Shown here: positions 1 to 64,000 of the stretch, one piece after another
How the letters are laid out: every line of letters begins with the position of its first letter
Position numbering within the stretch: the first letter of the stretch is position 1
From: Bugula neritina
Lineage: Eukaryota > Animalia > Bryozoa
Direction of reading: 5' to 3'
DNA: 64,000 nucleotides
Assembly: GCA_964035545.1 (NCBI GenBank)
Contig: OZ037769.1
Coordinates: 1,240,001-1,304,000, forward strand
Translations under genes and position numbers: made by a program
Notes under the pieces: model-generated
The model's database searches: none
What the model was told of the DNA's origin: nothing
The model's input: only the letters and a program-made list of their open reading frames with translations

Positions 1-192
1 TGGTTTATACGATGTGTCATGCCTTAAATAATCTCTGACTCAATTGACAGTCTCTTGGGAGTTGCTTTTTGAGTCTGTTCACTTTTACCTATAGCCCATA
101 GCAAATAGCTAAGTTCTACCAGCTGGTAGGTAATCCTAATGCTTGCAGGGTGCTTAGTCAGTCACTTCAGGTTTCCTTTTTTATTATTAAAG

Positions 193-3100
193 GCACCAGA
201 GATTTCAAACTGTGGAAGTATAACAGGATATGATGTAAGATATCCAACAACTGAATCTACACCTACACAAGTCAGTAGTACCAGTACTAGCATACTGACA
301 GATGGTGATGTGGAGATAACTTTCTCCGTTAGAGCTAAGAATAATGATAACCTCTACTCAGACTATGAGACAATTGTGTTTACATCTGATAAATTAGGTG
401 AGAATATATGACTATGTTCAATCTATTAACAAGGAAATATGTTTGTACAGTAAATGATGTTTATAGTGCAAAATTTGTTGCAGCTTAAAGACAAAATTTT
501 TAAAATGTTTTTATTTGAAAGGTCCAATTTGGAGCGGTACTCCCCAGCTTCTTATCCACCCTTCTAGTAGTGAGTGTGTCTCACTATCCTGGACTCTACC
601 AGATTATTCTAATGGTAATATACAGAAGTATGAGGTGAGATATTCTCATTCTATATAGAATCTAAGTTGAAACATATTTTTGTGATTTTGTAATTTTTAG
701 CTAAATAATAAAAAATAGTTTTCAGTTCTTATTGAAATGTTTCTAGATCAAGTGTACAGGTCAAGCAGCGTGGACAGAAGTTGAGTCATCTAAACTGGAA
801 ACACTTGTCTGTGGATTTTTTCCAAACACAGAAGTAGAGTGTATAATGAGAGCATGGAATGAACAGACATTCAGTGATGTCATTACATCAGATAAAGTTA
901 GGACTTACTGTTCAGGTAAATTTCAATGACATTAACAATTTATTATGCGTATTAAAATCTTGGGTGTTGCATTTATTACCTAATTTAGCCAAAAACAATT
1001 TTTTGTATTTTAACTGTAACTGTAACCATAGAATTATTATTAAAATAAGGAAGCGAAAATTATAAATTCTATTAAAGTTTACTACATGGGAAAACCACCA
1101 AGTTTAAAGAAATGTTAAAAATTGCTATTTTTAGCTCCTTTAAAACCAACAGCCGTTCAACTAGCAGGAATGACACCTACACAAGTTTTGACGGGTGGTG
1201 AAATTAAGCTAAGATATTCCATACAGTGGACTGTAAGTATGGTTTGAAGAAATATTAAACAAATATTTGGTTTATTCGCTGTGTCATGCATTAAATAATC
1301 TCTGACTTATTTGACAGTCTCTTGGGAGTTGCTTTTTTGAGTCTGTTCACTTTTACCTATAGCACATAGCCAATAGCTAAGTTCTACCAGCTGGTAGGTA
1401 ATCCCAACGCTTGTAGGGTAATTAGTCAGTCACTCCAGATTTCCTTTTTTATTATTAAAGGCACCAGAGATTTCAAACTGTGAAAGTATAACAGGATATG
1501 ATGTAAGATATCCAACAACTGAATCTACTCCTACACAAGTCAGTAGTACCAGTACTAGCATACTGACAGGTGGTGATGTGGAGATAACTTTCTCTGTTAG
1601 AGCTAAGAATAATGATGACCTCTACTCAGACTATGAGACATTTGTGTTTACATCTCCTAAATTAGGTGAGATTATATGACTATGTTCAATCTATTAACAA
1701 TAAACTATTTTTGTATAGTAAATGATGTTTATATTTCAGAATTTTTTGCAGCTTAAAAACAAAATTTGTCAAATTGTTTTATTCAAAAGGTCCAATTTGG
1801 AGCGGTACTCCCCAGCTTCTTATCCACCCTTCTAGCAGTGAGTGTGTTTCTCTATCCTGGACTCTACCAGATTATTCTAATGGTGATATACAAAAGTATG
1901 AGGTGAGATAATCTCATTCTATATAGATTTTGTGTTAAACTTTTTTTTTGTAATTATGTATTATTCAGCTGCAGCTGAATAATACATAATTACAAAAACG
2001 AAGTTTTCAGTTCTCATTGAAATGTTTCTAGATCGAGTGTACGGGTCAAGCAGACTGGACAGAAGTTGAGTCATCTAAACTGGGCACACTTGTCTGTGGA
2101 TATTCTCCAAACACAGAAGCAGAGTGTACATTGAGAGCATGGAATGAACAGACATTCAGTGATGTCATTACATCAGATAAAGTTAGGACTTACTGTTCAG
2201 GTAAATTTCAATGACATTAACAAATGATTATGTGTATTGAAACTTTAGGTGTTGCATTTATTACCTAATTTAGCCAAAAACAAAATAGTTTCATTCTAAC
2301 TGTAACTGTAAGCATGGGATTATTTTTAAAATAAAAAACCAAATTATAAATTCTATTAAAGTTGACTACATGGGAAAAGAACCAAGTTTAAAGAAATGTT
2401 TAAAAATTGCTATATTTAGCTCCTTTGAAAGCAACAGCCATTCAACTAGCAGGAATGACACCTACACAAGTTTTGACGGGTGGTGAAATTAAGCTAAGAT
2501 ATTCCATACAGTGGACTGTAAGTATGGTTTGAATAAATATTAAACAAATATTTGGTTTATTCCCTGTGTCATGCATTAAATAACCTCTGACTCAATTGGC
2601 AGTCTCTGAGGAGTTGCTTTTTTGAGTCTGTTCACTTTTTACCTATAGCCCATAGCTAATGACCAAGTTGTATCAGCTGGTAGGTAATCCCAATGCTTGT
2701 ATATAGAATACTTAGTCAGTCACTTCAGGTTTCTTTTTTATTATTAAAGGCACCAGATATTTCAAACTGTGAAAGTATAACAGGATATGATGTAAGATAT
2801 CCAACAACTGAATCGACACCTACACAAGTCAGTAGTACCAGTACTAGCATACTGACAGATGGTGATGTGGAGATAACTTTCTCTGTTAGAGCTAAGAATA
2901 ATGATGACCTCTACTCAGACTATGAGACATTTGTGTTTACATCTCCTAAATTAGGTGAGATTATATGACTATGTTCAATCTATTAACAATAAACTATTTT
3001 TGTATAGTAAATGATGTTTATATTTCAGAATTTGTTGCAGCTTAAAAACAAAATTTGTCAAATTGTTTTATTCAAAAGGTCCAATTTGGAGCGGTACTCC

Positions 3101-3475
3101 CCAGCTTCTTATCCACCCTTCTAGTAGTGAGTGTGTTTCTCTATCCTGGACTCTACCAGATTATTCTAATGGTGATATACAAAAGTATGAGGTGAGATAT
3201 TCTCATTCTATATAGAGTTTGTGTTAAACATTTTTTTTGTAGGCTAATTCTGTGTTATTCAGCTGACTAATAAAAGAGTTTTCAGTTCTTATTGAAATGT
3301 TTCTAGATCAAGTGTACAGGTCAAACAGACTGGACAGAAGTTGAGTCATCTAAACTAGACACACTTGTCTGTGGACATTCTCCAGACACAGAAGTAGAGT
3401 GTACAGTGAGAGCATGGAATGAACAGACATTCAGTGATATCATTACATCGGATAAAGTCAAGACCTACTGCTCAG
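193..3475 (+). repeat. About 1.27-1.29 kb tandem repeat unit encoding two FN3 domains (three copies visible)
   Basis: Near-identical exon and intron blocks starting at 193, 1461 and 2750. Confidence 0.92.
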
Positions 3476-6400
3476 GTACAGTTCTTATAGGACATTGAAA
3501 AATATTATGTATATTAAAATCTTGTGTTGCATTTCTCACTAAATTTGGCTGAAAACAATTTTTTATCTAATTTCATCATAAGTATAAGACATTTTTACTG
3601 AAAAAATGTAGCAATTTCAGAACATACACTTATATAGCTTCTGCAGCTTATTTAGGCAACGTGTAGACTATTTTTAATGCTTATTAGCTTGTTAGGATCC
3701 TTGCTAAGAAGCCTAATTTTTGTCTCTAAAGAATTCACATTTATCTTTAGCTCTTCTATAAGCCAAGCACTTACTATTAGTAATAATTAAATAATAATTG
3801 ATAATAAATAAAACGAATTTAGCTAGTACGTCTCTCTACCAACTATATTAACTCGTTTTTAACATAATTAATGTTATCAATGATTAAAGGTAACTTCAAC
3901 CAATATGAGTGATTCTGAAACCATCAGTGTATTTTTGAAAATAAAATAGTTTTAATAATAGATTTTAATGGAGCAAGCATTTTATCAGATGTAAGTCTAA
4001 TTTTTTTTACAGGTTCTACATCTCCAAGAAATATTCAGTTTAAAGATGAAGGTGTAAAATTAGAGAGTGACAGAAGAAGAAGAGAATACCTCATTACTTG
4101 GCAGGTCTGTGTGCTATCCAGCTTATCAAATAGCAATGAAATAACTGATATAAGTATTCTTTCAAGTAAAGTAACTTAATTAGTTTACAATAAAATGTGT
4201 TCTATTACTGATGATGGAGAAATATTTGCGCAAAGCTTTTTTTCCATTGTACCTTATAGCTGCTGCAGTTTTAACCAATGAAAACCCATTCTCATTTTAC
4301 TGTTTCAATCTTATTCTAATAAGATTCCATATTTGTTTTTTTTTGTACTTTTTTGCATAACAGGCCCCATCTACAACAAACTGTGACAGTATAGCAGAGT
4401 ATGAGATAAGATTTCCAACACCCTCTTCTGATATAATAACAACAAATTCTACAAATATGACAGTGTTTACCGAAAGTGATGTGGTGGTCACTTTCTGGGT
4501 TAGAGCTGTGAATAATGCTGGAAATATATCTGAACCTCGCATTAGAAATCTTACTACTGCTTTTTTCAGTAAGTCATTCTATCAAATCTATGCAAAATGC
4601 ACATCACTCTGAATAAGCCTTCAGTCACTATTTTATGCAACCAAGGCTGAAAAACAAACCAAGATTTAAATTATATGTTGTCATGTTCAAGCGTTTTTAA
4701 CATCAACACATAAAGTTTTTAGTATTTTAAATTTGTAATTCATTTAATGTAATTGGCAGTTGTTAAAATTTCCAAATTTTCATGTTTTGCTTTTTTCTCT
4801 GTTACTGCTAAAAAGTTTTTTGGCAGCTTATATCGCAATTGCTGTAAAAAAAATCTAATTTAATTTTACTGATAAAATTTGCAAGGTAAACAATAATGTC
4901 ACTGCAAGACTATCAAAAAACTGGTTTTAAAATTTTTCACAACTGCTTTATAACGTATAAAATACATATGTAATACATGCCCGTGTGTGAGTGATGGTAC
5001 GGCTGTGTGTGTATGTGTAGGTGCGTATGCCTATGTGTGTAATTCCATTATAATAAGAGTTTATATAATAATCAATACAAATGCATTCTCTATTATTTTA
5101 GCTCAAGATGAGCAGAGAGATGCAATCAGAGAGCTACATCTAGACTCAATGAGCTCTTACTGCGAGTTTAACCCCGCCGATGATCTCTCTCGTATCAAAC
5201 TTCTATCTGAAGCAGAAGATTTAGTAGAGAAGTCAGTTGGCTGGACAATACAGGTAGATTGTATTGATGGAGTACTGAGGAAGTTTTCATCAGAAGATGG
5301 TTTTACTGCTACATGTAATCCTACGATTGTTACCAATGATGATGGGTACGAAATACTAAAGTTTTATTGGGATCTCTCTCCTTTGCACGAGAATTGTGGT
5401 AATGGTAAGTGGTATTGAGATCTAGTTAGCACTATATTGTTTGTCTCCTTATAATTGTTGACTTTGGTAAAATGTCATTGGGGGAATTAATAAGGCTAAA
5501 TTTACTAAACATATGCTTTCTGTTTCTTGGATAATTCCTCTTCTTAGACTTCAATTCAATAACATCTAAGTTTGGCGGTTTTACATTGCATAAAAATGTA
5601 ATAAATAATTGCTTGGACTCTTGTTTTGTGTAGTTTTATTGCTCAAATATATCATTGGCGAGAGTGGTAGTTTTACAGAACCGAGCATTAGAAATTGCAC
5701 TCAATCCTTATTAAATTAGATGTAATAATATGAATAAATGAAGCACTCAAAGAGTTTTTGAAAATCTCTTTTATCTTGTGTTGATTGTGAAAGTTGTATG
5801 TTGATGTAGAGCCAGTTTGCACTCTAGTCAGTACTACCTACGACTACCCAGTCTTGGTAAATACATCTAATGAAGCGGAACTCGAGGATGAGATTCATAT
5901 GGAGCAAAGTGACGGACGAGTCCAACTCACTCGGCTACGCTTCTACCCAGTAGGCACAATGCAAGCGTACAATATTACAGATGATGCTTGTGGTAATGAT
6001 TCGCTCACTCTTTCTGCAAACTCAACAACATGGTCGATATGTGAGGCACCAGACAACCTTGAACTTCTCCTAGATAGTGATAGACCCGATGAGATGAGAA
6101 GATTCTTTTGGTTCTTCAACTATGGCCTTTGGTCCCAGCCACCTCCAGAATGCGGTAGAGTTTTCTGATACCAACTAGTGAGAAGCACCAGAAATTAGTG
6201 ATGAGATGAATATAAATGTTGTGATTATTATTTGAACTTCTGTTATTCAGCTCAAGAGCTCAAACCTCTAGTCTACTCAGACATAATGTTTAAAGTATTT
6301 TGCAAAAGCATGCAATTTAAGAAGATGTGAATAGCTGAAAAAAGAAGTCCAATTAATCTTTTCATTATGAATTAAAATTACTTTCATATAGTGTAGATGT

Positions 6401-9400
6401 TATGTTCTTGGTTCACGTCCCATTTTCCTGGTATATGTAATGGTGGAAACTTTTTTAATACTTTTAAACATGCAAAGATAAAAAAGTGGAAGATGACATT
6501 GGTAGTTAACCTTGGCGCTAAACAATGTTTCTCAAATGCCTATCAAGAGTTCTTCTACCTCTAAGGAGAACTATATGTCCTGGCAACGATTTACAGATAA
6601 TTTTATTTATATTTTATATCATCCTTTAGCTTTAGTGTTATTTTTAAAAACTTTAACCCATTAGTGCTAAGAACTTTGGTAGCAAAGTTAAGAAAACTAA
6701 GTTGTCGTACCGCTAGCATACTATACTGTAGCCTTTTGATTGTAACTTGTCTGTTCACTTTGATGTCTAGTGGTAAAGAGATGCTCAACTCCTAACAGAG
6801 CATTACTCGGTTTCTCTGACAATGATGTCTTCAGTAGTGAGCAATACTTCTACCAGTTGGGTGAGACTGTAAATGTGTCGTGTGCAGATGGTGAGAGTCA
6901 AACTAACCAGAAAGTAGACAGCGAGACGATTACCTGCCAGTAAGTAACCTGCTGCCGTTTCATTCTAATACTTTATTGGTTTACAACTTTCAACGCTGAG
7001 TTATTGTGTCAAAAAGAATTGATATATAATAGTATTAGACTGTAAAAAAAAAGGTTTATATTATTATATAAAACATACCTAGTCAATAACAGCAGTAGTA
7101 CCAATAACAATAGTCAATACCAACAGCAGCAGCAGCAACAGTAGTAGTAGCAGTATTAGCAGCAGCAGTAGCCACATAGACCACCATTGTCTTTTTCCAA
7201 TAACCTTTGTGTAGCCAAATTAAACTTCACCTCTTTTTTTAATTATTCCATTATTATTCTGCAATTGTGGCATTTTAGCAACTTTTCTCATGCTTATATT
7301 ATAATCAAATTTTGTCACAGATAAGCTTCAAAACTAAAAACTCACAACAGATGCTACAAGTCTGCAGGTCTGAATGGCCTAACTGATGCAAATTTATTCT
7401 GTACATAGTAGCATAAAGATGCATCTTTAATTTCATCAGTTTGATGTCTGAGCTTTCTTTGTTTAAGGCTGGATGATGATAAAAATGCTGTATTCCATAG
7501 AGACTCTGATTCTGCTCTGAGGCTACATTTTTGTAGTGAGTGAATTTATTTAATTTAATTATTTTCTAACCTATACTACTTATGTAACAGTCTCTCTTTA
7601 TCAATTTTGAACTACATAATAAAGCTAACTTTACAATCTGTCTCTGCAATTTTAAATGCTGCAGTAAACACATTTAAAAAGTAGTAGCACCAATTTGTAT
7701 GAATGGTTTTTACCTTGCTTTGGGTACACAAGATTAGCCAATCATGTTGCTGTTTTTTCAAACATTCAATTACTTTGGCTGTTTATTATTTTTCAAAGTT
7801 TCTCATAACAATAAATGATAATCTGCGTAAATATATAATGTTACCTGACAATTGTGAACCTACTATAATGAGTACTCAACACTCTTATCTAACAGGCGTT
7901 AAGACGTGTACCTTGCCATCTCTGAGTACTCTCGGTTTTGGAGACTACGCTGAGCTGGTTGAGTTTGATGAACTGTATAGCCTGTGGGAAACTGTAGTTG
8001 TAAGATGTCAGGATGGGAGCGCGCAGAGCCACCCTGATGTTGATACTGAAACTTTGACATGCGTGTAAGTTATAACGAGCTAGCTCAAGGTAAATATATA
8101 ATATAAACATCCCTTTCTGTTTTGCTACTATTTGGTTTCACAGATATAGGTAGAAATATAGAAAGGAAATACATAACAATTATATAGTATAATCACTATC
8201 TGGTTACCCCAAACTTATTGTAATGCTCAAGTAAAGTAGAACACATTTAGTAGCAAAATTTGCATAGTTCTGCAATTGTCTTTATGAAATGATAGATTGC
8301 GTAACTTAGCAATTTTGCTTTAAAGCAACCATCACAAGCATAAAGTGTAAAACATTCAACATAAATATCCCATGCCCTGTGAAGTGTGAATACAGTACGG
8401 TTTTAGTCTGTTTGCAATGTCAACCTGTTTGGGTTATAAAAATGATTGTTGTAACAGTGACTTAGGAGAAGAGAATTATGGATTTCAAAGAGAAGTAAAT
8501 TCTTCCTTGCAAATGGAAGAATGCCAACGTAAGTTGTATGAGTTAACTTACTTCAAACTATATTCTTGTAATTTACATTCTATATAGCATAAAAAATTAT
8601 GCAATAAGGTGAAGAATACTTTTAACCATATTATTGACTTATAAAAAAAGAATTTAAGTTTTTCACATTTCTTGCATTACTTCAATGCGAAAAAAATTGG
8701 TTAGACAAGATATTTATGTCTATGGAGCAAACAAACTAAAAAGCATATTGGACAGCTTATTGTTGTAAACTGGGAGCCTTATGTTAAAGTTGGCAAAATG
8801 TATTGAAAGACTAATAAAGTATTTCTACCATTATTTTGCTCATTTTCAAAGTAATACAGATAGCTTATTTCAAAGTCAATCACAAAATCATTAGACCTGT
8901 CAACAAGTGTTGATTGTGTGTCATGAGACGCGTCAACAGGTGCTCCTTGCCATCAACAAAAAAATATTCTAAAAAATTGTTGTTTTTCCTAATATTTAGC
9001 TTGTTTCTTTTAGCTATAAAATGTCCCATACCTGAAAACATTGCCATGAATGTGAGTGAAGCAGCCCTTCTAGGCACTAAGGCTATAGTTAGTTGCCCTG
9101 ACATAGACTTGGAGTACGTGAGTGAATGTGTGAAGTCAACAGATGACTCCGTGGAAGGAGTTTGGATCCCAACCCCCACCTGCCGTAAGTTCCTTTTGAT
9201 TTAGCTTTTTTTGACTCAGCTTTATATTTGTTTTCCAGTCAAAAGAAAAAGTTTCTCCAGTAAATTTTCTTTATAATATAATAAAATAGTCATGTGTTTC
9301 ATTCAATAGACAAATTACAATAATGTGGTATCTACCACTTTGCAGAAGGTTTTTATGTTCAAGAAAATGCACACTTTGTCTACTCAACAATATATGCTCA

Positions 9401-12400
9401 TCAACTTTACTTGCAGGCTCCAAGACATGTTGGCATTTTATGGCTGACTCAACTCTTTACGAGTATGAATTACAATATGGCCGCCATATAATTGGTGAGC
9501 CAAGACCGGTGCCACATAATGACACACTTACATTTGTATGTCCGCCAGGAACTGTGGGATACATGCGAAATGAGCTCTCATATCGATGTACTGTGTAAGT
9601 ATGTTTCCTTAGTGTAGGTGAAGCTGCAGTTATCTCTCTCTGTCATTTAGTAACTATTCTTTTGTATCACAATATAGAATCCATAGATTGTAATATATAT
9701 TTTATAGTATGTATTATAAACTCAACATAATATATTATGTGCTACAACAAATAATATATGTGATGGTGTGTAGTGTGAACCCTACATTAGTTTAGTGTTA
9801 TCATTTCACTTACAGGGGACCTGATGGGTTAGGTCACTTTGAAGCTCTGGAGCCTGACGTTAAACCCGACTGTCGAGGTATGGAATTATTATAATTTGTG
9901 TTTCTCTGTAAGCTATAATGTTGCAGTACTTTAGGCTATCACAAAACTAGGCTTAGATGTTGGGAACACAGTAAAGTCAGCAATGGATCATTGTACGTTG
10001 AATTTGGTAATCAGATCGGAGCAAATAACTCTCTCATCTTCATTAGACTGTTCCAGTCTTTACTACGTATCTGCTATGTTATATGCTCCATGTATCACGT
10101 CTGCATTGTATGCTCCATCTATTTGGCCTGAATTGTATACTATAGATATAAGATGCCCAAGAAATGACACCAGAACCGGGTCAGTTATGGACATCACCTA
10201 CCCGTACTACGAGAGACGCTGTGCTGAAGATGGCGACTGTAAGCTAGGCATGATCACTTCTCTCAACTGTTCTCAGAGTGAAACTGGATTCAAGCCTCTC
10301 TCTCAGTGTGTTGCACCTGAAAACGCCACGACCTTAGCAACTGATGCGGATGAGTTAGAGTTGGCTGTTGTGTCTGGCATTTGGTATCCACCTCCAGCGT
10401 GTGGTGAGAGTTTTTAATCTCTATTATTTTTATTATTTTGTATTTTATTTAGCAAAAATTATTTTACTTATTTACCAGGTGTATGAGCTGTTAATATCCA
10501 TCTCATAGAATACTTTTATTGTTTTTGTAATTTGAACATTGCATGTGATCTTTTGGCTAACTTAACTATGTATAGCCAGTGTAGTAGTGGTAAAAGCATT
10601 TCAATTAACCTCCTGTGATGATTGCAGACAGGGGTTGCTCACCGCCAGTCAACGTGTCTGGTGGAATGGATTGTAAAACGGGCAGAAGGTTTGACCGAGG
10701 AGAATGGAATTTCCTCGATGAGCTTGTCGTGACGTGTGTTTGTAAACCAGGATATGTAAGAGGTGAGGAGAGTAAACATTCTTGGAATCTAGAGTAACCA
10801 TAGCAACGCTAGCAACTTTTGTATAGCGCTTTGTAGTCATAGTAATGCTCGTAGTCATAGTAACATCAGTATAGCTATAGTAAACCTTATAAACGTAACA
10901 ACGCTGGCTACCATGGCTAATTTAGGCATCTCTGCTTAAACAAAACTTTTATTTTTCTTGCAATATGTCTGGTAAGTTTGAAATAAATGGTTTAGCAATA
11001 AAATTACTTTCTGGGCTTTTTGAAATTTTGATAATGAACCCTTTTCTTGGCTTAGAAAATTGCACATTATTATCACAGTTTGGGTAAGCAATTTATATTG
11101 GCATGCATTTAGGAATTTGTATTAGCATTAGTGAACAGTTTTGTTAGCTTTAATTCCTGTACATGTTTTTATCAGATGATGGGAGCTTGCCTGAAGCCAC
11201 CTGTAATGGACCAAACAACACATGGACCCCTACTAAGCCCTGTCACGGTAAAGCTTGCTAAATCTATGTATAACTGAATACAGTCTAAGTTTTTAAAGCT
11301 CTCAGCAAAATTAGTGAATATACTTCACAAAAACATTTATACAACACTGATGAGTTCAGGTGTGCTATTACCACTCCTGAAACAATTTTTATTTCTTCAA
11401 GTTATATAGCATAATATTGCAATTTAATTTAAATAAAAAATGTTCTTATAATGCAAATTCATTACTCCGCCATTCATTGCAATTATTTGTTGACCAGTGT
11501 CTAGAAAATATTTGCTGTAGTTTTTGCATTCAGCTACATGTATCATTTATACCCCAATGAATTTTTAACTTTAGTTGACTGTGGTCTAACACCGACACTC
11601 CCCCACGCTATTCAGGAAGTAACATACTATACAGATTACGCTCTCATGTACATTTCCTGTGAAGAAGGATATCAGCTATTTCCTGTTCGAGATGAACTTT
11701 CCCCGCCTGCTATTTCTCAATGTCACCATGGAAGTAAACGTTGGCTTAACCTGCATCTATATGAATGCAAAGGTGAAGTAATTTCACATTGATTGTCTTC
11801 AAAATGTACACTAGAGTCTTCATCAGTTGATATATATAGTTGTATCATTGTAAGAATATTGACTTTACCCAATATCACTGATTGCTATTACAGCTATTGA
11901 TGGATGTAAAGCCACTGAGATCACATCTAAGCACACTGATATTCATCTGCTCCCTGAAAAAGACATGTTCAATGATGTTGAAGTTGCCATAGCTACGTGT
12001 ACTAGGGGGTATTTGGAAAGCAAAGCTTGTAAGTATGTCATAGCCTTGTCTTCACTACAACCTCTGCAATTTGACAAGTATTCTGTGTAATAACAACATA
12101 AGTGATTATATAAATACTTACACATATTACTTACATTATATAATATCCTATGACTGTCTTTTATGTTATCCTACCTAAACAGCTAGTGTGATTTTTTCAT
12201 GTTCTAATGATAAAAAAATATTAGCTTTGAATTGCTCAAATTGGTGACGTTTTTTGCTTGAATATTCTTCTAAGTTTTAAAATGCTTTCATCTTTATTGA
12301 TCTGGATATTTGCTATTTGGGGAGTTGTAAAGGCACACCCACTTTTGACAATTGGCTGTAGGTTTCAGAATTTGCTATGATATGGTCATTTCCTTGTCCT

Positions 12401-13351
12401 TCACCTCAACACTATAAGTCTATAACATATCATGTAGACACTGCCATGTATGTTATCTTGCAGTGTATGAAGTTCTAAGATGTAAAACTGTTTGGGAAGA
12501 AGTACCTAATAACAAAACATGGCAGCCCATAGCCACTACCCTCGGAGAGCCAGAAGATCTTAGTGCATGGCCTTTCTTTCCCAATGTCACTATGAAGTTT
12601 GTCAGATTCGAATGGGATTTGTCTTACCTCAGAGGAAATCTCTCTTGCATCAGTAAGTAATGATTATGAATTTTATATGCTATAACTATATGTATACAGG
12701 ATGTAGCAGAAACATAAGGTGAGGGCCCATTAGATGAGTTGCCCAATTTGGTATTGCTAAAAAATTTGCACAGTTCAAAAATGTACTGTTGTGCGCAGAT
12801 GTTTGGTAGACGTCATGCAAGCAAAATGCATGTTTGATTTTGCTACCTAAATAGCTGTTCACTTTTAAAGTATTGGGTTTTTGTTTTAACTCTGTAGCAA
12901 TCAAATATTTTTTCTTTCTGTAGTTATATTTAAAGTTGTCTCATCACTGCAAAGTGCAGAGGGTGCAGCTATAGTGACAAATGTCTTTAAGTGAACAATA
13001 AACTCAAACAAAGATGTTGTCAGCTAGTAAATTTCTACTTTTTCAGACATTGTGACCTTACGTAAAAATGTGCTTGGAGCTATAATTTAGCAAAAGATGT
13101 CTATAAAATTATCACTTAGCATGTTTTAAATTAAATAAACAGTCATTTGGGTTCTAAATGTTTTTACAATGTTATATTAAAGATGCATATTTCAATTATA
13201 TATACGCTGTAGTTAAGAATATATGCAATGAATGCATGTAAACGTTATACAGAAGATATCTATTTAGTTAAGAGTTACAATATAATTTGATATATGATTG
13301 ACATTTTCAGCTGACGGACAAAACTTTGGCACATGGGAGATAACTAACTAA
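193..13351 (+). CDS. G1 (5'-truncated by window): secreted-class gene, at least 6.5 FN3 domains + about 10 CCP/sushi-like modules, no TM
   Basis: Spliced exons with AG/GT ends and continuous frame. FN3 exons: 193-397, 522-634, 747-915, 1135-1232, 1461-1665, 1790-1902, 2032-2200, 2420-2517, 2750-2954, 3079-3191, 3307-3475, 4013-4104, 4364-4568 (motifs LSWTLP..NG.IQKYE, VRAKN/VRAWN/VRAVN). Cys/Trp modules: 5102-5404, 5810-6154, 6771-6939, 7468-7535, 7896-8064, 8458-8528, 9014-9184, 9417-9594, 9816-9877, 10146-10403, 10628-10762, 11176-11247, 11575-11772, 11894-12028, 12464-12652. Terminal exon from 13311 (TDGQNFGTWEITN*), TAA 13349-13351. Confidence 0.85.
1945..1998. repeat. Perfect 54-bp palindrome in an FN3 intron (second copy 38633-38686 with 1 mismatch)
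   Basis: tttttgtaattatgtattattcagctg|cagctgaataatacataattacaaaaa. Confidence 0.95.
7088..7172. repeat. Degenerate (CAG/TAG/CAA)n trinucleotide repeat in an intron (copy at about 23606-23692)
   Basis: cagcagcagcagcaacagtagtagtagcag. Confidence 0.85.
10795..10920. repeat. Degenerate catag(c/t)aac minisatellite in an intron (copy at about 27320-27445)
   Basis: Repeated catagcaac/catagtaa units. Confidence 0.6.
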
Positions 13352-13595
13352 CTTCATTATCAAGAACTCTCTATAGAGTGGAAACAGTTCAGATTACCTG
13401 GACACACTTGTGTTAGATGTCTGGTCTGGTCTTTAATGCGTGCTTTACTCAGTCTTCACAATCAACTGTGTATTGTCAGTGTGTGAACATACTATTCTAG
13501 CTGTTTCAAAAATAAGCTGTAAATGTTTTGAATCTATATACTGCTTTACTTGTTGTGTACTGTATGCATATCTGTTGTTTGTTTTGACTGGTTAA

Positions 13596-13601
13596 AATAA
13601 A
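13596..13601 (+). terminator. Putative polyadenylation signal of G1 (G2: 30119-30124; G3 candidate: 44534-44539)
   Basis: AATAAA about 250 bp after the stop, followed by GT-rich sequence, conserved in G1 and G2. Confidence 0.55.
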
Positions 13602-36757: not shown

Positions 36758-36849
<92 letters not shown>

Positions 36850-48600: not shown

Positions 48601-48798
48601 TCACGAGAATCAGATAGCTCTACAAAACTTGCATATAACTTTGATATAAGAAATGAGTTACAAACTAGACACATTGCTCTCTACAGCTCTAACAGTATTG
48701 GACTGAGCATACTAGAGGTTCAGATATTTGTATATGGTAAATGTTCTATTTTAGCTAGTGTATCACAACTCAGCCAGTTTGTATTGTATTGTTTGTAT

Positions 48799-48835
<37 letters not shown>

Positions 48836-51800: not shown

Positions 51801-54800
51801 TGAATTTCAAGTGCAAAATGACTCATTTTCAAGTGATGTATTTTTATAAAAATCACAAAATTTATTTCCTTGGGTACACAACTCTTTATCTCAAAACATT
51901 TCTAGGGCCCCAGATAACACCACGAGATTTCCAGTTGCAATTTATCAACTCGAGTTGTATAAGGTTGTCATGGCAACCACCGAAATATCCCAATGGACCA
52001 ATCACACAATATGAGGTAATCGGTTACACAACGAATACATATACATTGTAATTATTACATAATTATTATGACGTTTGGTGATGCTTCATTTTTCAAAAAT
52101 GTACTCAAAATGTTAAATTAGGATTAAATTAGATCAAATGAAGATATGAGATAAATTTAAAGAATATGTTATATTAGTATAATATACTTTAAATTTATCT
52201 CATTTTTTGTCTAAAAGAGTCATAAATTGAAACCTAAACTTGTGACTCATTGTAGTACAAGTGTACTGGACACAGTGACTGGCTCATTGTTGAGAAGGCA
52301 ACTCTTGACTCTGTAAAATGTGGATATTCAGCCAATCAGCTGGTAGAATGCGAGATATTTGCTAGAAATAGCAAAGGAAAGAGTGATAGTGCCAGAAAGG
52401 ATATAAGAATTGTCTGTGCAGGTAAACTATCTATTGTCAAATTATGACAACTTTTTTTGTTTGCGTTAAAGTATCGGAAACTTCAGTATAAATGTAGTTC
52501 AAATTAAGTCCTCAAATTATCTGGATGGAATATATGTAGTGCTATTAAGGTAAATCTATATAGACAATAATGTGATGTAACTATTCAATGATGTAGTATA
52601 ATCTCTTCTCATAACATATTTCATATTGCAGTAATACATTAGGAACCTAAGTATAAATGTAGTATAATCTCTTCTCATAACATATTTCAGCTCCAGAGTT
52701 CCCCCTTGATTTGTCTCCATACATCCTAGAAGTATCTTCCATCAACTCTGATGGTCTGGCAGAAATCAACTTGACTCTACCTAATTCCTCAGTGGTAGGT
52801 TTAATTTAAAGTACTAAATTACTTTTCAAATTGCTGCCTATGAATAGTTACTTCATTTTTTGCGAAACATTTTGTATACAAACTTGAGTAAAGTCATCCA
52901 AAGAAATCCGCTACGATATACACAAAAAAAATTAAAATACTTCTGCTTAAATGTTTTTTTATGCTTTTTTTCTCGACTTATCACCATTCGTATTCTATGA
53001 TAAGTTAAATAAGCTTACTTTGTGTTTTAAAACCAAAACATAACTTTAATTTTGTCTCAATTTTTACAGATCAGAATAAACTGTGCCTCACTCACAAGTC
53101 TAGAGTATAAACTCAGTGATCAAGACAACTACACGAATGCTGGAGAAGTTATTTATGGACTACAACCCTACACTAACTACACTCTGTATATCAGAGCTAC
53201 TAATAATGAGCAATTTACTCAGAATCTGACTTGGACACTGCTGACAAAACAGCTGGGTAATTATTGCTTAAATTACAAAATATCAAGACTATATTGTATA
53301 TATTGTGTTGAACTGGGCTCTTTTAGTATTTATAAAAAATATTTATTTGTTTTCAATAAATTATCTACCAAAATGACTTGATCTGAAATATTATCCTTAC
53401 TATTTTAGCTCCAAGTGATTCTCCTAGAATAATCACAGACTTTGAAGCCAGCTGTGTGAATTTAACCATTTCTCCACCTGAGCATCCTAATGGACTTTTA
53501 ACACATTACTCTGTAAGTTTTAAACTGAAATGAGGGTGTTAAAAGCTTTAATATTTTCCAATATTCAAGTGGCAATAAAACAGCATTAATCACGTTTTCA
53601 AAATGTCTTTTCTTCTATAGTATGCATGCAACGAGGTGAACATAGGAATAGATGAGAATCTCACCAAAGTTGTTGACAACATATCTGTGAGTTATGAGGA
53701 AAAGGAAACTAAACTATCCCTTTGTAACCTGACTTCAGCAACTAGAATTAGATGTACAGTAAGAGCTGTGAACAGTGCTGGAGAAAGTCCAGTGAAAGTG
53801 GTGGATGGATACACCAGACTTAAACGTAAGTATATGGCCACATTTAAACATTTAATCATATCAAAGTTTGCAGTAGAAAAAATTTGAGAGAAAATTTGAC
53901 GGAGCAGACTTTAAAGTATGAAGTCAAAATTTAAGTTTGTTTTGTTGAAAAACCAATGTAAAAGATCAGGAAAATATTGCATGATTTTACTTTTTCTCTC
54001 TATTAGCGTTTCCAAATGAAGATTTTATTCAGACTAAACCAAACTGTTCCAATTGTCAAGATATGGTTTATTACACTGTGTAAATATTTTTACTTTTTAA
54101 ATTTATTAATCACATAAATTAAAGCGATTATTCTTTAGAGATTATTTTATTTAAATTGTTAAAAAAAATTCATCACAAATGAAGTGTTAACTATAATTAT
54201 ATTTTAGTGAAAGAGGGAAATGATATTATAGCACAAATAGCGCCATCTTCTTTTCCTGGGGAGCCGCTTTTAATAACCATTCCCACACCTTTTTTTGAGA
54301 ATGGAAAAGTGAGGTTAGTCTAGTTTATATAATACACAAATTCACATGATGTTATAGTAATTGACAGGAAATGTCAGTTAAACACTCATCCAAAGATCGC
54401 AATGATTGTAATGTTTTTTACAGCAAGTACCAAATAGTTCTCCAACAGCAATCTCAACAGAACAGAAAGAAGAGGGATTTCTCATTAGAAGGTGACGGAT
54501 GTAACTCAACTCAACTATTCAACTACTTTGTGTCTCAAGAGAAAGGGTTAACATGTTACATAACAGCAGAGATAGATGTAGAGTCAGATGGTGATACAAC
54601 AGTCAATATTGGTGATGGTAAAACATATGGTGGGTATGAGAATGTGGATCTGGTTCCTGGAGCAGACTACTTCTTGATGGTTGTCGTACTAGTAAAGGTA
54701 GAGGTAAGAGTTTGCTGAATGCTAAATTTGTTGAAAAATTATCATGCATGTGGATGCTTTTGACAGCGCAAACAATTAGCCCTATTTCCTTGCTATAAGC

Positions 54801-56166
54801 CGAGGTAAATGTATATCTACTACATTTTATTATTTAGTACAGTGAATATTTCTGCACGGGATTATTCAACTAAATTTTTACCAGAAAATAAAAAAGCTTG
54901 AAATTATTGTTTTAAATATTGACCACAATTTTATTAATTATTGGATTTTGTTCTATTTTTAGGCAGCTGAGGATTTATTACAATATTTCTTGCCCCATGT
55001 TGAGTTCAAAAGTATGTATGAAGCTACGTTATCCATAAAAATTAAAAATGCTTATATGTTGCATTGCAGCAGTTTTTACCTAAGCTTCTCTTCATGCACA
55101 ATTATTATGTAGCATTACATAATATATTCTCAAATTATCTATACTAATAATGTAACTATATACATTGCTGTCTCATGACAGATACTCTTTCACTGAAGTG
55201 TATGGAGCCTCCACCAGTAGCCAACTCAGATCTCATAATCAGTGATACAGTCAACCTGGGTTCTGTGGTTATTTACTCTTGTAAAGTTGGGTTTACTAAA
55301 ACTCAGGGAGAGCAGCTGGTCTGTCAACTGATGGGAGATGAAGCTGAGTGGGTTGGGGAGTTGACAGTCTGTAGAGCAGCTGACAAAACAGGTAACAAAA
55401 CAGGTGCAACTATAAATCGTGCATGTTTAAATTGTGTCTATATGTTTTAATTTATTTTCATGTTATTTGTTTACCTGTCAGCTCGGGTTAAAATCACTCT
55501 GTTATGCTGTGATAAAACAAAAATAATTACTATCACGTACACACATCAATTAATTGCTTTTTTTAAGAAAAATTTTCTTAGAAAAATTCTCTTGCCGTAA
55601 AGCTACATGTAAATATAAAGCAGCCATAAATTGAGCATATATGTACAGTATATATTCACTAGAGCTTTCAATAAAATTTAAGCATTCATGAAATGCGATC
55701 TATAATGCTTCTTTTAGGACTGATAGCTGGTTTGGTCACAGTCTCTTGTCTAGTGGTGGGTCTGGTTGTGGTGGTGGTGGTTCTGGTATGCAGAAGTCAG
55801 AGAAGTACAGGAGCACCGCCCTCAGAAGTAGTGAATCTGGACACAATAAACCAATCAAAAAGAAGTGAGTATGAAGAACCAGACCTGATGTCTAAAAGGA
55901 CTTCTAGTAAAGTGATAGATGACACATACAGCAAGGTGGATGATGGAACCTATAGCAAGGTTGATGACAGTTATAGTAAGGTGGTTGATGACACATACAG
56001 TAAGGTGGTTGATGACACATACAGCAGACTTGATGGACCTGAGGACACCCATAATTATGATAAGATTGAGATTTCTAACAGAAATAAAGATAACAAACCA
56101 TCATCTTCTAATGTAGATGCAGCAAGTTGTGATCCTCTTTATATCAATAGACTGGGTTGTAATTAG
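45675..56166 (+). CDS. G4: complete receptor-class paralog of G3 (same architecture, no Tc1 in the lectin intron)
   Basis: ATG 45675. Lectin-like exons 46263-46448, 46948-47184, 47905-48090, 48498-48737. FN3, juxtamembrane (ORF 54371-54718) and sushi (ORF 55175-55450) exons colinear with G3. TM/tail exon 55718-56166. Confidence 0.9.
55918..56067 (+). repeat. Same tyrosine-motif coding repeat and ITAM in G4
   Basis: ORF 55693-56166: [50 protein letters not shown]. Confidence 0.9.
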
Positions 56167-57725: not shown

Positions 57726-60162
57726 TTAATAGCTGTGGTATAATTTCTTCTCATGTGATTGTGAATATAACTCAGTCTATTCATATATTACTGTTCTATT
57801 ACAGACATACTAATGAATGCTCAAACTAAATATAAAATATATCATGATTACTAATATGCCCATTGAGTTGTGTTATAACATTGTGATGTAAAGCCTAAAA
57901 ACTAACTTAGAAAAGATCTCTAAGACCAGCAAATTTACTATTGATAAGGAAGTTGCTTTAACTTGAAACTTGACTTGTATATTACTTTAGCTTGATTCCA
58001 AATAGCTATAGCCTAATTTCTACTCATGTGACTGTGGATCTAACTACTTCTCTGTCTATACAAATTCTTTTGTTCTATTTTCTTTTACTAATGAATTCTC
58101 AAACTGAATAGAAAGCCTTGTATTAGCAAAAGCAATAAAAAGCTGACAAAAGATCTATAGAACAGATCTATTATTATATAGAAACTCAACAATGAACAGG
58201 GAAGTTGTTTTAGACTAAACTTCTTTACACACAATATATTCTATTGTGAGTTAAACTATAATATGTTCTACATAGCACTCCAGTATTAGAGGGTAGAGTA
58301 GGTTGAAATACAGCCTAGAGTAAAATTTTAAAGTAGACTATTCATATTGTGTTGAGTGAAAGAAGACAACTTATTAGTTACAGTATCTATGAAAGTCAAC
58401 TAAGCAGAAGATGATGTTGACTAGAATATTGTTGTGTCTACTAGTTATACCACTTCTAGTAGTAAACTCTTACTCTCCAGGTATGTGTGTAGTGTGAGTA
58501 GCAAGAGTTAATACAGTATATTTTTTGTAACTAATGCTGAAAACAGTTCTTTGAAAACAATCAGCAATGTTTATGGTGATTATATGGCTGTAGGTTTTTG
58601 TTTGTTACCAGAGTTGTAAAAAAGGGGCAACTTTACAAAAACATATAGTTTTATTAGAAAGCAAAATAGAATATCAAAAGGGATCCCATAAACCAAACCT
58701 AGAGAATACAGAGTTTTATTATGTACTAAAGTCAGTATATGGGTAGAATGACTATACTTCTTTAGTTTTTCAATCAGTGTACAGCCTTAATGTAAAATAA
58801 TAGATACGCAACTGTTTTCATAATCACTAGACCAAATTTCTTTCGATCTCATTCACTTATGATAGTAAAATGGAAAAATGTTATTGTATGCTACTATATC
58901 AGTGAACCTAGCCAAAGAGAGGGCCACGCAGGCAAGCACTGCCTATGGTAATGGTGATGGGTATTCTGCAAACAAGGCAGTAGATGGGGACACTGACACA
59001 TATTTCTACAGTGCTGTGAAACCCGATGATTGGTGGAGAGTGGATTTTGATGATGTAATAATTGTTAGAAGAATAGTCATTGACACTGCAGCCAGTAAGT
59101 ATTGATCTCTGAAACCAAATAAAATTGTTTTCAAGTTAATACAAGTAATACCAGTAAGCCATCATTGTCAGCTCATATTGTTTTAATTGCTTCATAGGGG
59201 TTTCAGCTAATATTATATACATTTATATGAAATCGAAAAAAAATATGTATTTAAATTGAGGCAATGTCTATAAGCTTTTACTGCAAGTGTGAAAACTATA
59301 CTAACTTGGATGTTTAATGGTTAGACACTGAGATAATGGTTGACTATATTATAAGTGAAATATCATTAATATATAACGTAGTAGTTTACAATGCTATGTA
59401 TACTGTACGAAGTACACAGGCTCATGAGTTGTGTTGAATGCTTAGTTTGTGATGACAACATATTGTGAATGAGGCAGTATAGTTGAAAACAGTATAAAGC
59501 AAATTGCTTCTGCTAACACTATAGTGTTTTGGTAAAACAATTAGGGAAAATATATTATAAACTCTAGTTAAACATGTATCTTTGTACTTGGATCATTGAA
59601 CATGCAATGGTTTGATATTTCACACTATTTTGAAGACAACAGATCACACTGTATATCGTGAAATAGTAAAAAAGCACAATAATCCAATGCGTACAATCTC
59701 TGTATACTATTTTAAACCATAATTTCGTCCAACTTTTCTATTTTTAGCTCCAGCATTTACCGATGTCTTTATTCTATCCACTTCTATGATGGAACCCGCT
59801 GATGTACCTCACCCAGAGAGTTCAGACTGGAGAGTTCTACAGTCTGGAGTAACACGCACAGAAAGTGCTTTTTTATACCATATTCAAATTTGACTTTGCC
59901 CTAGATGAGAATGTAGAAGCTAGACACATTGCTCTCTACAGTTCTACTGGTGGACTACAGTTCAATGAGGTAGAGGTCTATGATGCAGGTGAGTGAAGTA
60001 GTTGCTGAAAATTAATTTACTGCCCAGAAATTTTTTACACCATTTTTTCTATCGATTTAGAGGTGGTTTTCAGTTGAAAAACTAGAACACTGTTTAATTA
60101 TTTGTATAATAACCTTAAATTTCATCAGGCTACAGTGTGTTAACATGTGTAATGTAGAGATT

Positions 60163-62501
60163 TTTATGTATGTTATTTACTAGCTATTTCTTGTAAGTTC
60201 TTAGTGTTTTCCTGCAAGTTTTATATATCAAAATGACCCTTAGAGTGTGCACTACAATTGCCACCCTATAGATTTCTACAGTTTTGATGTTTTCTACCCA
60301 TTTTCGGGCTATTTACATAAGCAGCTAGGGAAGTGCAACTCTTGTATTTTTATGCTTCCAAAATTCCTGGCTTTTGTCAGCCACAAAAAGATGAACAGTG
60401 AACTTTGACTTTGTGCATGACATCATGATATTATAATTAAAGCATGATTTCCTTCCATAATTTAAAATCTGTGAGCTTTTACTATAGGTGCACACTTGAG
60501 TGCTGCGCATAGACAAAAGGAGAGCAGTAAGTCTTACTTCAGAATCAAAGTCTGTCGTGGTTTTTTTACATAAAGAAGGTTTTTCAATCAGAAAAATATC
60601 TGAAAAAGGGGGCATGGCAAAGACAACCGCATATCAAATTATCAAGAAATTTATTGATTGATTGATTGATTGATTTTATTTCTATCACTAACATGATATA
60701 TATGTTGTGAAAAAAAAGTGTTAAATACTGATGCCTATGATATTAAAAATGGCAACGGTGTACTATATACATGGCTTAAAAATAGGAGTAAAAAGTCTCT
60801 GAGGCTAGAAGTTCAATTAACAAAAAGTATTGTACAAGTTTATTTAGCTTGAGTGCTGCCTGGCGTATAAAAGAATCTCTGCCCCAAGTGCTTCTGTATT
60901 TAATAATAATCTGTGCAGTTCATCTAGCTTGTAGCGTGCAGTTTGTGCATTGGTCAGTATGATGGCTGGCAGGGGAGCTCTTGAGTTTTTTCCTTTTTTT
61001 CTTGTTCTAAGTATTTCAGGGTCAACATTTTTAACTAGAGTTTTGAATTGTCAATTTCATATATCCTTCAGATAGTCTCTTTTAATAGAGGTTTTAACTT
61101 CCAGCAGAGAGTTAATGTCCATGTATGTTAGACTCGTCACACCTCTTAGGTGGTATACATGAGGGGGAATAAGAGTAGCACCAGTAATAACAACGGCTGC
61201 AATAGCTGCGCCATTATGTTAGCAGAGTTGTAAGAGCTATTGAAAACACAACCTCTCTCTATGGAGACTGGCAGTGTAGCAGACCGACCTCGAAGTGAAT
61301 GACCAAGAACTAGCACACCCAGAGATGACAAAATTCTCATTAGAATCAGCAAGAATTGGATTGCCACAAAACAAGTCGTGAGTTGGCAAAAGAATGGTCA
61401 GAATCAACAGGAACAACAGCTTGGACATCTCTGATAAGTCGAAGATTGCTGAGTCAAGGTCTATGTAACTGCAAAGCAAGAAGGAAGCCTCTACTGAGAA
61501 GCAACGAAAAAGCAGGCTACCGTGGGCCAGGGAGCATGCTAGTTGGACAATGAATGATTGGAAAAAAGTAATTTTTTCAGATGAATCCACATTTAAAATG
61601 AACAATCATGCAGGAAACTGTTTTGTTAGAAGATGCCAGTATGAGGAGTATAACCCCCAATGCATAGTTCCAACAATTAGGCACCCTATCAGTGTTATGT
61701 TCTGGGGTTGCATATAAACATCAATAAGTGTAAGTTGACTCAGTATTTGCTCTGGAATGATGAATGCCCAAAAATATATAGAAACCCTGAATGCTAAACT
61801 TCTTCCAACTATAAAAAAAAAAATTTCAAATAAAGTTTACATATTTCAAGATGACAATGCACCATGCAATCGGGCAAAAAACTGTTAAAGAGTGGATGAA
61901 AAGGCAGTGTGTCTCAATGCTTAGCTGGCCAGTACAAAGTCCCAACTTGAACCCAAAAGAAAATCTGTGTTCAAGAATGGCTAAAATAGTCTCCTCACAG
62001 AAGCCAATAACTAGGGTGACACTCATAGAGTATGTAATTCATGCATGGCATCATGTTGTGACTGAAGGCGAGTTGGAGAAGCTGTAGGAGTCGATGCTTT
62101 GTCGATACCGACATGTGATTAAGAAAAAAAACTGGCCAACAAAATATTGACACTAAAATTTAAAACATTGTGTTGTAATGCTGCTATAAGGTGTAGAACA
62201 AATCACATATGATACTTTTTTAAAATTTTAAATAAAATAGCACTATGTAATACAGTACACACAAATTGTGAGAGCATCAATTAATTCCCATATATGCATA
62301 GTAGCGCATTGCTTCATCTAAATTTTGGAAAGAAATAAAAAGTGACACTAAAATAATTTATATCACTGAGAAAAAGAGATCTGAAGAATCATTTTGATAG
62401 GCACCATGTCTATGGAATTGTTTTTCTTATGTTGTAAAATTAGCTTGGAACATTGCAATACTGAAAAACAATAACGCATTCTTAAACTTTTCCATAGCAC
62501 T
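60163..62501 (+). mobile_element. Second copy of the same Tc1 insertion at the same intron position in G5 (copied with the gene)
   Basis: Matching junctions and the same nested insert; additional frameshifts (ORF fragments 61356-61553, 61851-62087). Confidence 0.9.
60655..61262 (-). mobile_element. Second copy of the nested bipartite LINE in G5
   Basis: Homologous to 33507-34149, with a (TTGA)n tail at the left end. Confidence 0.75.
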
Positions 62502-64000
62502 AAAATTTATATATTATTGAACGTAGCTTATTGTTGAATTGGCAACACATATGTGCTAGGTACATCGTTATACATCATTCTAATTACCATAATATATTAT
62601 AATGAGTTCACATTCAGTTATATATCTATCTTCTAGATGTGAGTAAAATAGTATTTGATTTAGACTACCGTTTCTTCCATGCTATAGCCTTAATTCTTAA
62701 TTATATATGATAGAATCATACCTATAAATATCACCTGTTGTTAATAGAAAATTTAAATTATGTGAAGTGCATTCATACACACCTATTAGACACTCCATCA
62801 AGTGGTTAGTTCATTAGTAGGACAGTATAATTCACTTACAGATTATTCTTACTATACTGCATCACTTACCAAAATGGTCACCTTATTCTGTAAACATAGG
62901 GAGAGGAAAATCTACTATATATATCAAACAATTTATAGCCTACACTACATGAATCAAGAGTGCATGCATAGTAAATAATCAAATATTCGTAAGATGGCAT
63001 TTTTTAGAACTGCTTATATACTTTTCAGTGAATATAGCAGAAGGAAGATATACATTCAGCAAGACTCATCTTAACATATACGTGGTTAGTGGGAAAGCAG
63101 TAGATGTAAACCCTAGGTCGTTTTATAGAAGTGAAGACAAACCTGATCAGTGGTGGAGAGTTAAACTGAATGAGACTGTATATGTTAGAGTACTAGCTAT
63201 TCGTAATAAAGATTGTGAGTATAATATTTTTGTTAATAATTTACAAAGCAGCTTATTTGCTACTTAATCAGAACTTGTATTAAAGAGTTGAAATAATTGC
63301 CCAACTATAGTTAGGGTAAATTTTAGGATAAGGTAGAGGCATATTTTAAAAAAAGAAAGATTACCATCGCAAAAGTGATAGAATGACATTTGTCGAACTA
63401 CTTTAAATATTTAGGAATCGGTTTTATTCAATTTAGTTAAGAGATTTAGGTTTCATTCTTTAAACGTAATGTAAATAGCTTTATCTTCTACTATTTTTAC
63501 TCTAAACACCCATAAGACTTTTGGGAAATAACATACAACTTTTTTTACGAACAATTCAATAAAATCCAATAAAATTCTTTTTTGTTTTACTTCAGCTGAG
63601 AGGTTTAAAGACGTATCAATCCTGTCATCAACACACTCCACAATAACAGAAGATCCAACACCTACAAGTTCAGAATGGACTCTGGTCATGTCTGGGATAT
63701 CACGAGAATCAGATAGAAGTTCTACAGAGCTTACATATAACTTTGATCTAACAAACGAGTTACAAACTAGACACATTGCTCTCTACAGCTCTAATAGTAT
63801 TGGACTGAGCATGCTAGAAGTTCAGATATTTGCATATGGTAAGTGGTTTAACGTTATATTTCATTTGTACATATATATATATATATATATATACACTCAC
63901 AGAAGTTTATAGTCGCTATCCCTGTGAGAAACTCCTGATGGAAAGGGTTTTTGGTAAAATTGGCTGAAAGCTTATTTAATTGAAACTATCATTGAAATTA

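Follow-up and report, generated by a model that had tools for sequence, protein, structure and literature searches.

A hallmark of natural-killer and myeloid recognition in vertebrates is the pairing of activating with inhibitory receptors, and in the KIR, Ly49 and SIRP-type clusters these immune receptors are encoded by tandem paralogues whose ectodomains are kept alike by gene conversion. Here we describe a gene array in the bryozoan Bugula neritina. The stretch that was analysed (hereafter, the window) is 64,000 nucleotides long (G000:C5:1240001-1304000, C5 being contig OZ037769.1), and own-genome searches together with the flanking DNA place it in the middle of a tandem array of seven genes, G1 to G7, at approximately C5:1,230,400-1,346,100. 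Common to the array are a signal peptide, two F-type-lectin-like domains and a stalk of fibronectin type III (FN3) domains, which are joined to one of three 3' ends: a cysteine-rich end in G1 and G2, a tail with an immunoreceptor tyrosine-based activation motif (ITAM) in G3, G4 and G6, and protein tyrosine phosphatase (PTP) domains in G5 and G7.

The array resembles the KIR, Ly49 and SIRP-type clusters in its tandem paralogues, near-identical ectodomains, opposite cytoplasmic ends and conversion. It differs from them in that its inhibitory partner would carry a phosphatase itself, whereas theirs recruit one via an immunoreceptor tyrosine-based inhibition motif (ITIM), in that its activating member has its own ITAM, whereas theirs use an adaptor, and in its ectodomain, which is built of lectin and FN3 domains rather than Ig or C-type lectin domains and also occurs in a soluble third form. 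With the receptor phosphatases LAR/R2A, PTPRU/PTPRK/R2B and CD45, the array shares an FN3 stalk, a juxtamembrane FN3 domain with a basic furin-type site, a single transmembrane (TM) segment and, in G7, an active-looking first phosphatase domain followed by a degenerate second one; however, its head consists of two F-type-lectin-like domains and not of Ig or MAM domains, and G1, G2, G3, G4 and G6 have lost the phosphatase.

Two further systems are close in part. The Alr family of Hydractinia, located in the allorecognition complex, consists of clustered single-pass receptors with immunoglobulin superfamily (IgSF) ectodomains, some of which have ITAM tails, and includes inhibitory members with ITIMs (PMC9546547). 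Both families belong to colonial invertebrates and comprise clustered single-pass receptors, part of them ITAM-tailed, with a Syk-type kinase (here a candidate) in the genome; the Alr ectodomains, however, are IgSF and the inhibitors carry ITIMs, and neither a built-in phosphatase nor a secreted cysteine-rich form is described there. PTPRZ/phosphacan is described as having soluble and receptor forms of one ectodomain, produced from one gene (PMC2132488). It offers another receptor phosphatase ectodomain that is also found in secreted form, whereas the forms in the array are separate paralogues, of which the secreted one gains a different string of C-terminal modules. Our literature search found no paper on lectin-headed receptor phosphatases or on bryozoan ITAM receptors. 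The new elements here are the third form, which is secreted, the array of seven genes and the anatomy of the swap points.

A tandem array with three 3' ends

On the + strand of the window, five runs of exon-like blocks lie in stop-free frames (Table 1). Gene models were read exon by exon, and unspliced exon sequences were used as queries, the own-genome searches extending over the 216-Mb assembly (33% GC). In self-blastn, G1 (2737-14851) and G2 (19255-31370) are 96% identical across 12.1 kb, and the mutual identity of G3, G4 and G5 is 82-94%. The preliminary description of the window, made from its letters alone, had recognised only two ends, one secreted and one ITAM-bearing; this number is too low, as G5 runs past the window into TM and phosphatase exons. 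In the exon-block reading no PTP exons were found in G2, G3 or G4 before the next signal exon, with G3 and G4 ending at a stop after the tyrosine-rich tail and G2 after the cysteine-rich modules. By the criterion of the PTP domain, G2, G3 and G4 would be derivatives of the receptor phosphatase family and not members of it.

Phosphatase-type and ITAM-type ends

In G5 and G7 the juxtamembrane exon is followed by a different TM exon and then by exons that match Y_phosphatase with E values of 1e-11 to 1e-13. PTP domain 1 of G7 is intact, with the motifs DFINA, KCVQYWPD, WPDQRVP and VHC/SAGVGRTG and the Q-loop, while domain 2 is degenerate (WPE; Cys-x5-Arg absent). Judged by DYINA-type, WPD, HCx5R and Q-loop motifs in a cytoplasmic PTP domain, G5 and G7 belong to the receptor-type tyrosine phosphatases. 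In G5, Gln replaces the P-loop Arg, and a T run in the second lectin-1 exon (at about window 59860-59880) differs in length by one base, which shifts the frame and may be real or may be an assembly error.

The ITAM-type genes share the 3' order FN3 E-G, juxtamembrane FN3 with a furin site, one sushi domain, TM and tyrosine-rich tail, which the preliminary description had correctly laid out for G3 and G4. In these two genes the juxtamembrane exon matches Pfam Fn3_PTPRU (E 1e-8) and PTP_tm, and the sushi domain passes Pfam with 26.5 bits against a cut-off of 20.7 (block 55151-55447). G4 forms a complete in-frame chain of canonical GT-AG exons, and its last exon encodes a 24-residue TM segment followed by a 124-residue tail with eight tyrosines, four or five of them in a DDTYSKV-type repeat, which is followed by YSRL-x8-YDKI and a terminal YINRL (a YxN site). 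We took as an ITAM the pattern Yxx[L/I]-x(6-9)-Yxx[L/I] placed beyond a TM segment in the cytoplasmic tail (consensus as in PMC9546547). The YSRL-x8-YDKI motif, located 76 residues past the 24-residue TM segment in G3, G4 and G6, fits this consensus, and an ITAM arose in 1.7% of composition-preserving tail shuffles by the loose definition and in 0.15% by a strict, acidic, 6-8-spaced one.

A profile of the tail, searched against 1.8 billion representatives, found only four fragments, all from relatives. For both the tail and the cysteine-rich exons, the relatives found in databases are limited to short genomic contigs, from a JGI metagenome and Logan runs SRR4020080-84, with approximately 81-86% DNA identity to this genome, non-coding DNA included. 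In these related-species contigs the ITAM and YINRL are unchanged, while the number of YSKV repeats varies from three to five. Counted as DDTYSKV-type repeats (window 43900-44210), there are five in this genome versus three or four in a related species. The G6 region at window +84982 to +85849 would, if expressed, yield a stalk shorter by about two FN3 domains.

The own-genome search also returned SH2-SH2-Tyr-kinase matches at C7:14.37 Mb, which share a strand and fall inside 6 kb; this locus fits a Syk/ZAP-70-type kinase and is put forward as a candidate only, Src-type SH2-plus-kinase loci being likewise present in the genome. Dozens of small contigs (C15, C33, C37, C44, C66, C101, C105 ... 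C314) gave full-length kinase-domain matches as well, each with 5-13 in-frame TAA/TAG codons and with TGA nearly absent, which suggests that the assembly includes DNA from an associated eukaryote in whose code TAA/TAG are sense codons (ciliate type).

The cysteine-rich end

G1 and G2 end in approximately 11-12 cysteine-rich modules (c0-c9 plus c1b, 23282-23458, and c6b, 27687-27761), encoded by exons whose junctions are nearly all phase 1, with the c2-c3 and c4-c5 junctions requiring additional small exons. By eye the modules have a CCP-like Cys/Trp spacing with CxxP...GxWxPxPxC ends. The best Pfam Sushi scores, 15.7 bits for c1b and 14.5 bits for c7, are both below the 20.7 cut-off, and the nine other modules had no Pfam Sushi match, either as whole exons or as trimmed modules. 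A PDB profile search, hhalign against the validated sushi domain and a local HMM search were blank for these modules, the ESM Atlas gave no usable match and an own-genome profile search returned self matches only; their AlphaFold models, with pLDDT of 57 and 51, were too low for a fold search. Hence, where the preliminary description had counted about 10 CCP modules, the modules and their CCP-like spacing were recovered and the Sushi threshold was missed. "Multi-sushi" is a reasonable guess for this end, and the complement-regulator reading had been built on a CCP label that was not validated.

In G1, G2 and a third gene at C5:2.57 Mb, the last residues encoded by the final exon are ...CISK, just before the stop, and in two related-species contigs the stop comes directly after CISK or one residue later. 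The C-terminus is non-hydrophobic in all cysteine-rich copies, so a TM or glycosylphosphatidylinositol (GPI) signal is absent; the earlier statement that G1 and G2 stop with no TM segment is borne out. In the own-genome search this end was limited to G1, G2 and the C5:2.57 Mb gene, which is 84% identical, intact and equipped with all c0-c9 exons. Array-type and standalone cysteine-rich genes were both found in related-species contigs.

Lectin-like heads and FN3 stalk

The signal peptide and two F-type-lectin-like domains that had been ascribed to G2-G5 were confirmed. A conserved signal-peptide exon with the donor CAG/GTATGT is found at 14458, 30981, 45675 and 58411, and the first head exon matches Pfam F5_F8_type_C with 32.5 bits (cut-off 28.2). 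A profile of 13 first-half head exons matches striped bass FBP32 (3CQO) in both its tandem domains (E 8.4e-10) and eel agglutinin (1K12; E 2.4e-5); because it matches these solved F-type lectins, the label "F-type-lectin/discoidin-like" was right. The heads therefore resemble F-type lectins in this first-half profile match and in the tandem arrangement known from FBP32. They differ in belonging to a long receptor instead of constituting a small soluble lectin, and in a six-residue loop: the C-T-H loop of 3CQO and 1K12 aligns to a gap in 13/13 bryozoan head domains, in an alignment that covers first-half head exons, the triad Arg positions falling in the next exon. In those lectins the fucose-binding His, part of a His-Arg-Arg triad, lies in this loop, before the WWRVDL strand.

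Several stalk exons match Pfam fn3, and the FN3 stalk that had been noted in G1-G4 is real and present in all seven genes. In G4 the lectin exons are all phase 1-1, and each FN3 domain is made of a phase 1-0 exon plus a phase 0-1 exon. A 1.27-kb unit of FN3 B + C is present in G1 as three head-to-tail copies with 88-90% identity (window 1-3564), so that the G1 stalk is longer than that of its sister G2. A signal exon of its own is absent from G1. Directly upstream, at window -9601 to -4280, lies a divergent extra head with a signal exon, two lectin domains and FN3-A, which is 46-80% identical to other heads and has all exons open. The strong phase-1 donor at its 3' end is compatible with the phase-1 lectin acceptor of G1; the start of G1 is thus probably at approximately -9601, some 9.6 kb before the window begins, and its head is probably doubled, with four lectin domains.

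A (TA)n/(TATC)-type microsatellite, translated YIYIYI, lies in the intron just 3' of the second lectin domain in several paralogues (17747-17956, 36705-36917 and 48759-48850) and differs in length among copies. The intron of G3 that separates its lectin domains contains a Tc1/mariner-type transposase remnant (Table 1), and G5 has such a remnant in the same intron at 61344-62084 (Pfam DDE_3, E 1e-13). As the insertion is common to G3 and G5, the duplication or conversion tract that gave the G3/G5 head postdates it.

Table 1. Positions of array features, numbered from the first nucleotide of the window; a plus sign before a position marks DNA downstream of it
Feature	Coordinates	Strand	Remarks
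G1, 3' part	130..12660	+	FN3 B-C x3, FN3-D, Cys-rich modules, stop
G1 FN3 B-C unit x3	130-3495	+	
G1 FN3-D	3919-4633	+	
G1 Cys-rich modules	~5100-12657	+	TAA stop 12658-12660
G2, complete secreted-type gene	14458..29183	+	signal exon 14458-14527
G2 lectin domain 1	14990-15172 + 15920-16153	+	
G2 lectin domain 2	16873-17052 + 17483-17719	+	
G2 FN3 A-D	17859-21085	+	
G2 Cys-rich exons c0-c9 plus c1b, c6b	21619-29180	+	TAA stop 29181-29183
G3, ITAM-type gene	30981..44210	+	signal exon 30981
G3 lectin exons	31777-36724	+	
DDE_3 Tc1/mariner-type transposase remnant	34416-34970	+	G3 intron between lectin 1 and lectin 2 exons
G3 FN3 A-G	37008-41849	+	
G3 juxtamembrane FN3	42462-42725	+	RKKR 42486-42497
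G3 sushi	43220-43393	+	
G3 TM	43764-43835	+	
G3 ITAM	44064-44111	+	
G3 YINRL	44184-44198	+	TAG stop 44208-44210
G4, ITAM-type gene	45675..56166	+	signal 45675-45744
G4 lectin exons	46263-46448, 46948-47184, 47905-48090, 48497-48736	+	
G4 FN3 A-G	48859-53825	+	seven two-exon domains
G4 juxtamembrane FN3	54438-54703	+	RKKR 54464-54475
G4 sushi	55199-55391	+	
G4 TM + tail exon	55718-56163	+	TM 55720-55791, ITAM 56020-56067, YINRL 56140-56154
G5, 5' part, phosphatase-type	58411..64000	+	signal exon 58411
G5 lectin exons	58905-63837	+	
G5 beyond window: FN3			
G5 beyond window: juxtamembrane FN3	+69605		
G5 beyond window: TM exon	+70361		
G5 beyond window: tandem PTP exons	to ~+77000		

Origin of the ends and swap points

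Distant paralogues at C5:1.49 Mb and C3:8.11 Mb (30-55% identical) both have the architecture lectin-FN3-juxtamembrane-PTPx2. The phosphatase receptor is thus the widespread form and probably the ancestral one. At C5:0.46-0.50 Mb a lectin-FN3-sushi gene (Sushi E 1e-9) adjoins a lectin-FN3-PTPx2 gene. The sushi gene, which is 33-55% identical, has a TM segment and a tyrosine-rich tail with YEEV, YESI-x12-YTGL and YENC, and the sushi-TM-tyrosine-tail form is likewise old.

The homology between ITAM-type and PTP-type genes ends at a common phase-0 donor after the juxtamembrane exon, and the cysteine-rich chain and FN3-E use one phase-1 donor after FN3-D. Based on these boundaries, the ITAM and cysteine-rich ends look like intron-phase-compatible swaps.

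An isolated copy of the sushi and TM/tail exons is found at C5:8.29 Mb (C5:8,288,598-8,289,517). It still has the ITAM spacing, but its sushi exon contains two in-frame stops and the copy of the related species carries a frame shift; it was therefore rejected as evidence of constraint and is a dead partial duplicate.

Selection and relatedness along the genes

Selection was assessed from exon-wise Nei-Gojobori counts, reported as medians. The dN/dS ratio is below 1 in every part of the genes, the tail included. Lectin domain 1 is the fastest part, at 0.75 (dN 0.105), followed by the sushi domain at 0.5, lectin domain 2 at 0.41, the PTP exons at 0.37, FN3 A-D at 0.34, FN3 E to juxtamembrane at 0.32 and the cysteine-rich exons at 0.26-0.32 (0.26 for the standalone C5:2.57 Mb gene versus G2). 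Median dS is approximately 0.15-0.17 in the lectin and FN3 regions and 0.05-0.10 in the sushi and tail. These ratios indicate genes that are, or recently were, under constraint. The head had been described as variable, an adjective that holds for lectin domain 1 and not for the remaining regions.

Nearest-neighbour relations shift along the genes. For lectin domain 2 and FN3 A-D, the lowest dS is found between G3 and G5 and between G4 and G7, that is, each ITAM gene with a PTP gene. In lectin domain 2, dN is 0.006 for G3/G5 and 0.026 for G4/G7; in FN3 A-D, dS is 0.049 and 0.089, respectively. As read from the DNA, the array consists of clustered paralogues with near-identical ectodomains and opposite ends (ITAM versus PTP), as paired receptors do, and the pairing of ITAM and PTP heads is the mark of conversion acting to keep paired receptors alike.

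Discussion

We consider it probable, with real reservations, that the locus is a young seven-gene array within an older, genome-wide receptor-PTP family, in which one lectin-FN3 ectodomain came to be joined to three ends by phase-matched recombination. The end with a TM segment and tandem PTP domains (G5, G7) would be ancestral and the ITAM end and, after FN3-D, the cysteine-rich end derived, the recombination having taken place in phase-matched introns while gene conversion would keep the heads alike. From this architecture and evolution we infer a signalling logic and a biological role, in which the heads would bind a ligand, probably a glycan, the ITAM forms would become phosphorylated and recruit a Syk-type kinase, the phosphatase forms would carry the opposing enzyme to the same ligand, and the secreted forms would compete for that ligand or tag it. 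It is tentatively suggested, as a possibility that we regard as rather doubtful, that this amounts to a three-state germline module, with an activator that has its own ITAM, an inhibitor that has its own phosphatase and no ITIM, and a soluble competitor or opsonin, setting a threshold at which non-self colonies, symbionts or microbes are recognised. A role in immunity or allorecognition is conjecture.

A number of observations weigh against this proposal. The classical roles of FN3-type receptor phosphatases are neural or adhesive, and the heads are without the loop that bears the fucose-binding His of F-type lectins. The dN/dS of lectin domain 1 could be relaxation rather than diversification. 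The ITAM is, as far as the sequence goes, a motif only. G5 may be decaying, given its T-run frame shift and the change of its P-loop Arg to Gln, and G6 is without two FN3 exons (the FN3-E second-half exon and FN3-F) and has a stop in its FN3-E first-half exon. Finally, the splice from FN3-D to c0 appears only phase-compatible, and the cysteine-rich gene at C5:2.57 Mb stands alone, without head or stalk.

An alternative is that the array is a tandemly amplified family of adhesion or neural receptor phosphatases, with the ITAM and secreted genes as recent chimeric by-products that serve no dedicated signalling purpose and the ITAM match incidental. The furin-site juxtamembrane FN3 and tandem PTP domains do resemble those of LAR/PTPRU-type adhesion phosphatases, the array is young (dS ~0.05-0.25), and damage is present in G5, G6 and the C5:8.29 Mb copy. 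However, dN/dS is below 1 in the sushi, tail and cysteine-rich exons, the related species keeps both tail and cysteine-rich genes, an ITAM is rare in shuffled tails, and the much older sushi-TM-tyrosine-tail gene adjoins a PTP gene at C5:0.46 Mb. We regard this alternative as unlikely.

The standalone gene at C5:2.57 Mb raises the question of whether G1 and G2 each comprise two transcription units, one a truncated gene of head and FN3 A-D, the other an independent gene for the cysteine-rich modules, so that the lectin head would not be joined to the cysteine-rich end. In the 12 kb upstream of the standalone gene, lectin and FN3 exons were not found, and c0 is the exon from which the homology of this gene to G2 starts. 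In G1 and G2, however, the c0 frame has neither a start codon nor a signal peptide before the first module; a strong phase-1 donor at the end of FN3-D and a phase-1 acceptor at c0 are only approximately 530 nt apart (21085 to 21619 in G2), and the later junctions keep to phase 1 almost throughout. Adjacent FN3-D and c0 were looked for in a related species as well: two metagenome scans returned nothing, and none of the Logan contigs recovered was long enough. It should be noted that the product of head and stalk would be without a membrane anchor under either reading. We judge the division into two units improbable.

Least likely, and in our view quite improbable, is the two-form system of a secreted multi-sushi opsonin and an ITAM receptor, related as antibody and B-cell receptor and serving immunity or allorecognition, for which speak the common heads and FN3 A-D stalk of secreted-type and ITAM-type genes, the consensus ITAM and the place of bryozoans among allorecognition-capable colonial animals (PMC9546547), and against which stand the third, probably ancestral phosphatase end on the same ectodomain and the CCP identity of the secreted end, which was not validated. 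What survives from the preliminary description, which had arrived at this picture, is the existence of matched soluble and signalling forms with a common head, both of which are present, with an ITAM that is consensus and conserved in a related species; the phosphatase form had been missed. The comparison with antibody and B-cell receptor leaves out a receptor phosphatase, probably ancestral, whose ectodomain is the same (G5, G7 and distant paralogues at three other loci), and a closer analogy would be a set of paired activating and inhibitory receptors with a soluble form added.

Under the explanation that we favour, a young array with one ectodomain and three recombined ends, the swaps in phase-matched introns and the standalone copies of both ends on the same chromosome, one of them broken, would represent exon shuffling in progress. 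To our knowledge, there is almost no molecular immunology of Bryozoa, and colony allorecognition is known in them. Recombinant heads, phospho-tail peptides and the G7 phosphatase domain are testable reagents. Based on our findings, the array appears to build the logic of paired receptors from different parts, namely an F-type-lectin-like head, FN3 domains, a built-in phosphatase and a soluble form, and thus bears on how often paired-receptor logic arose outside vertebrates.

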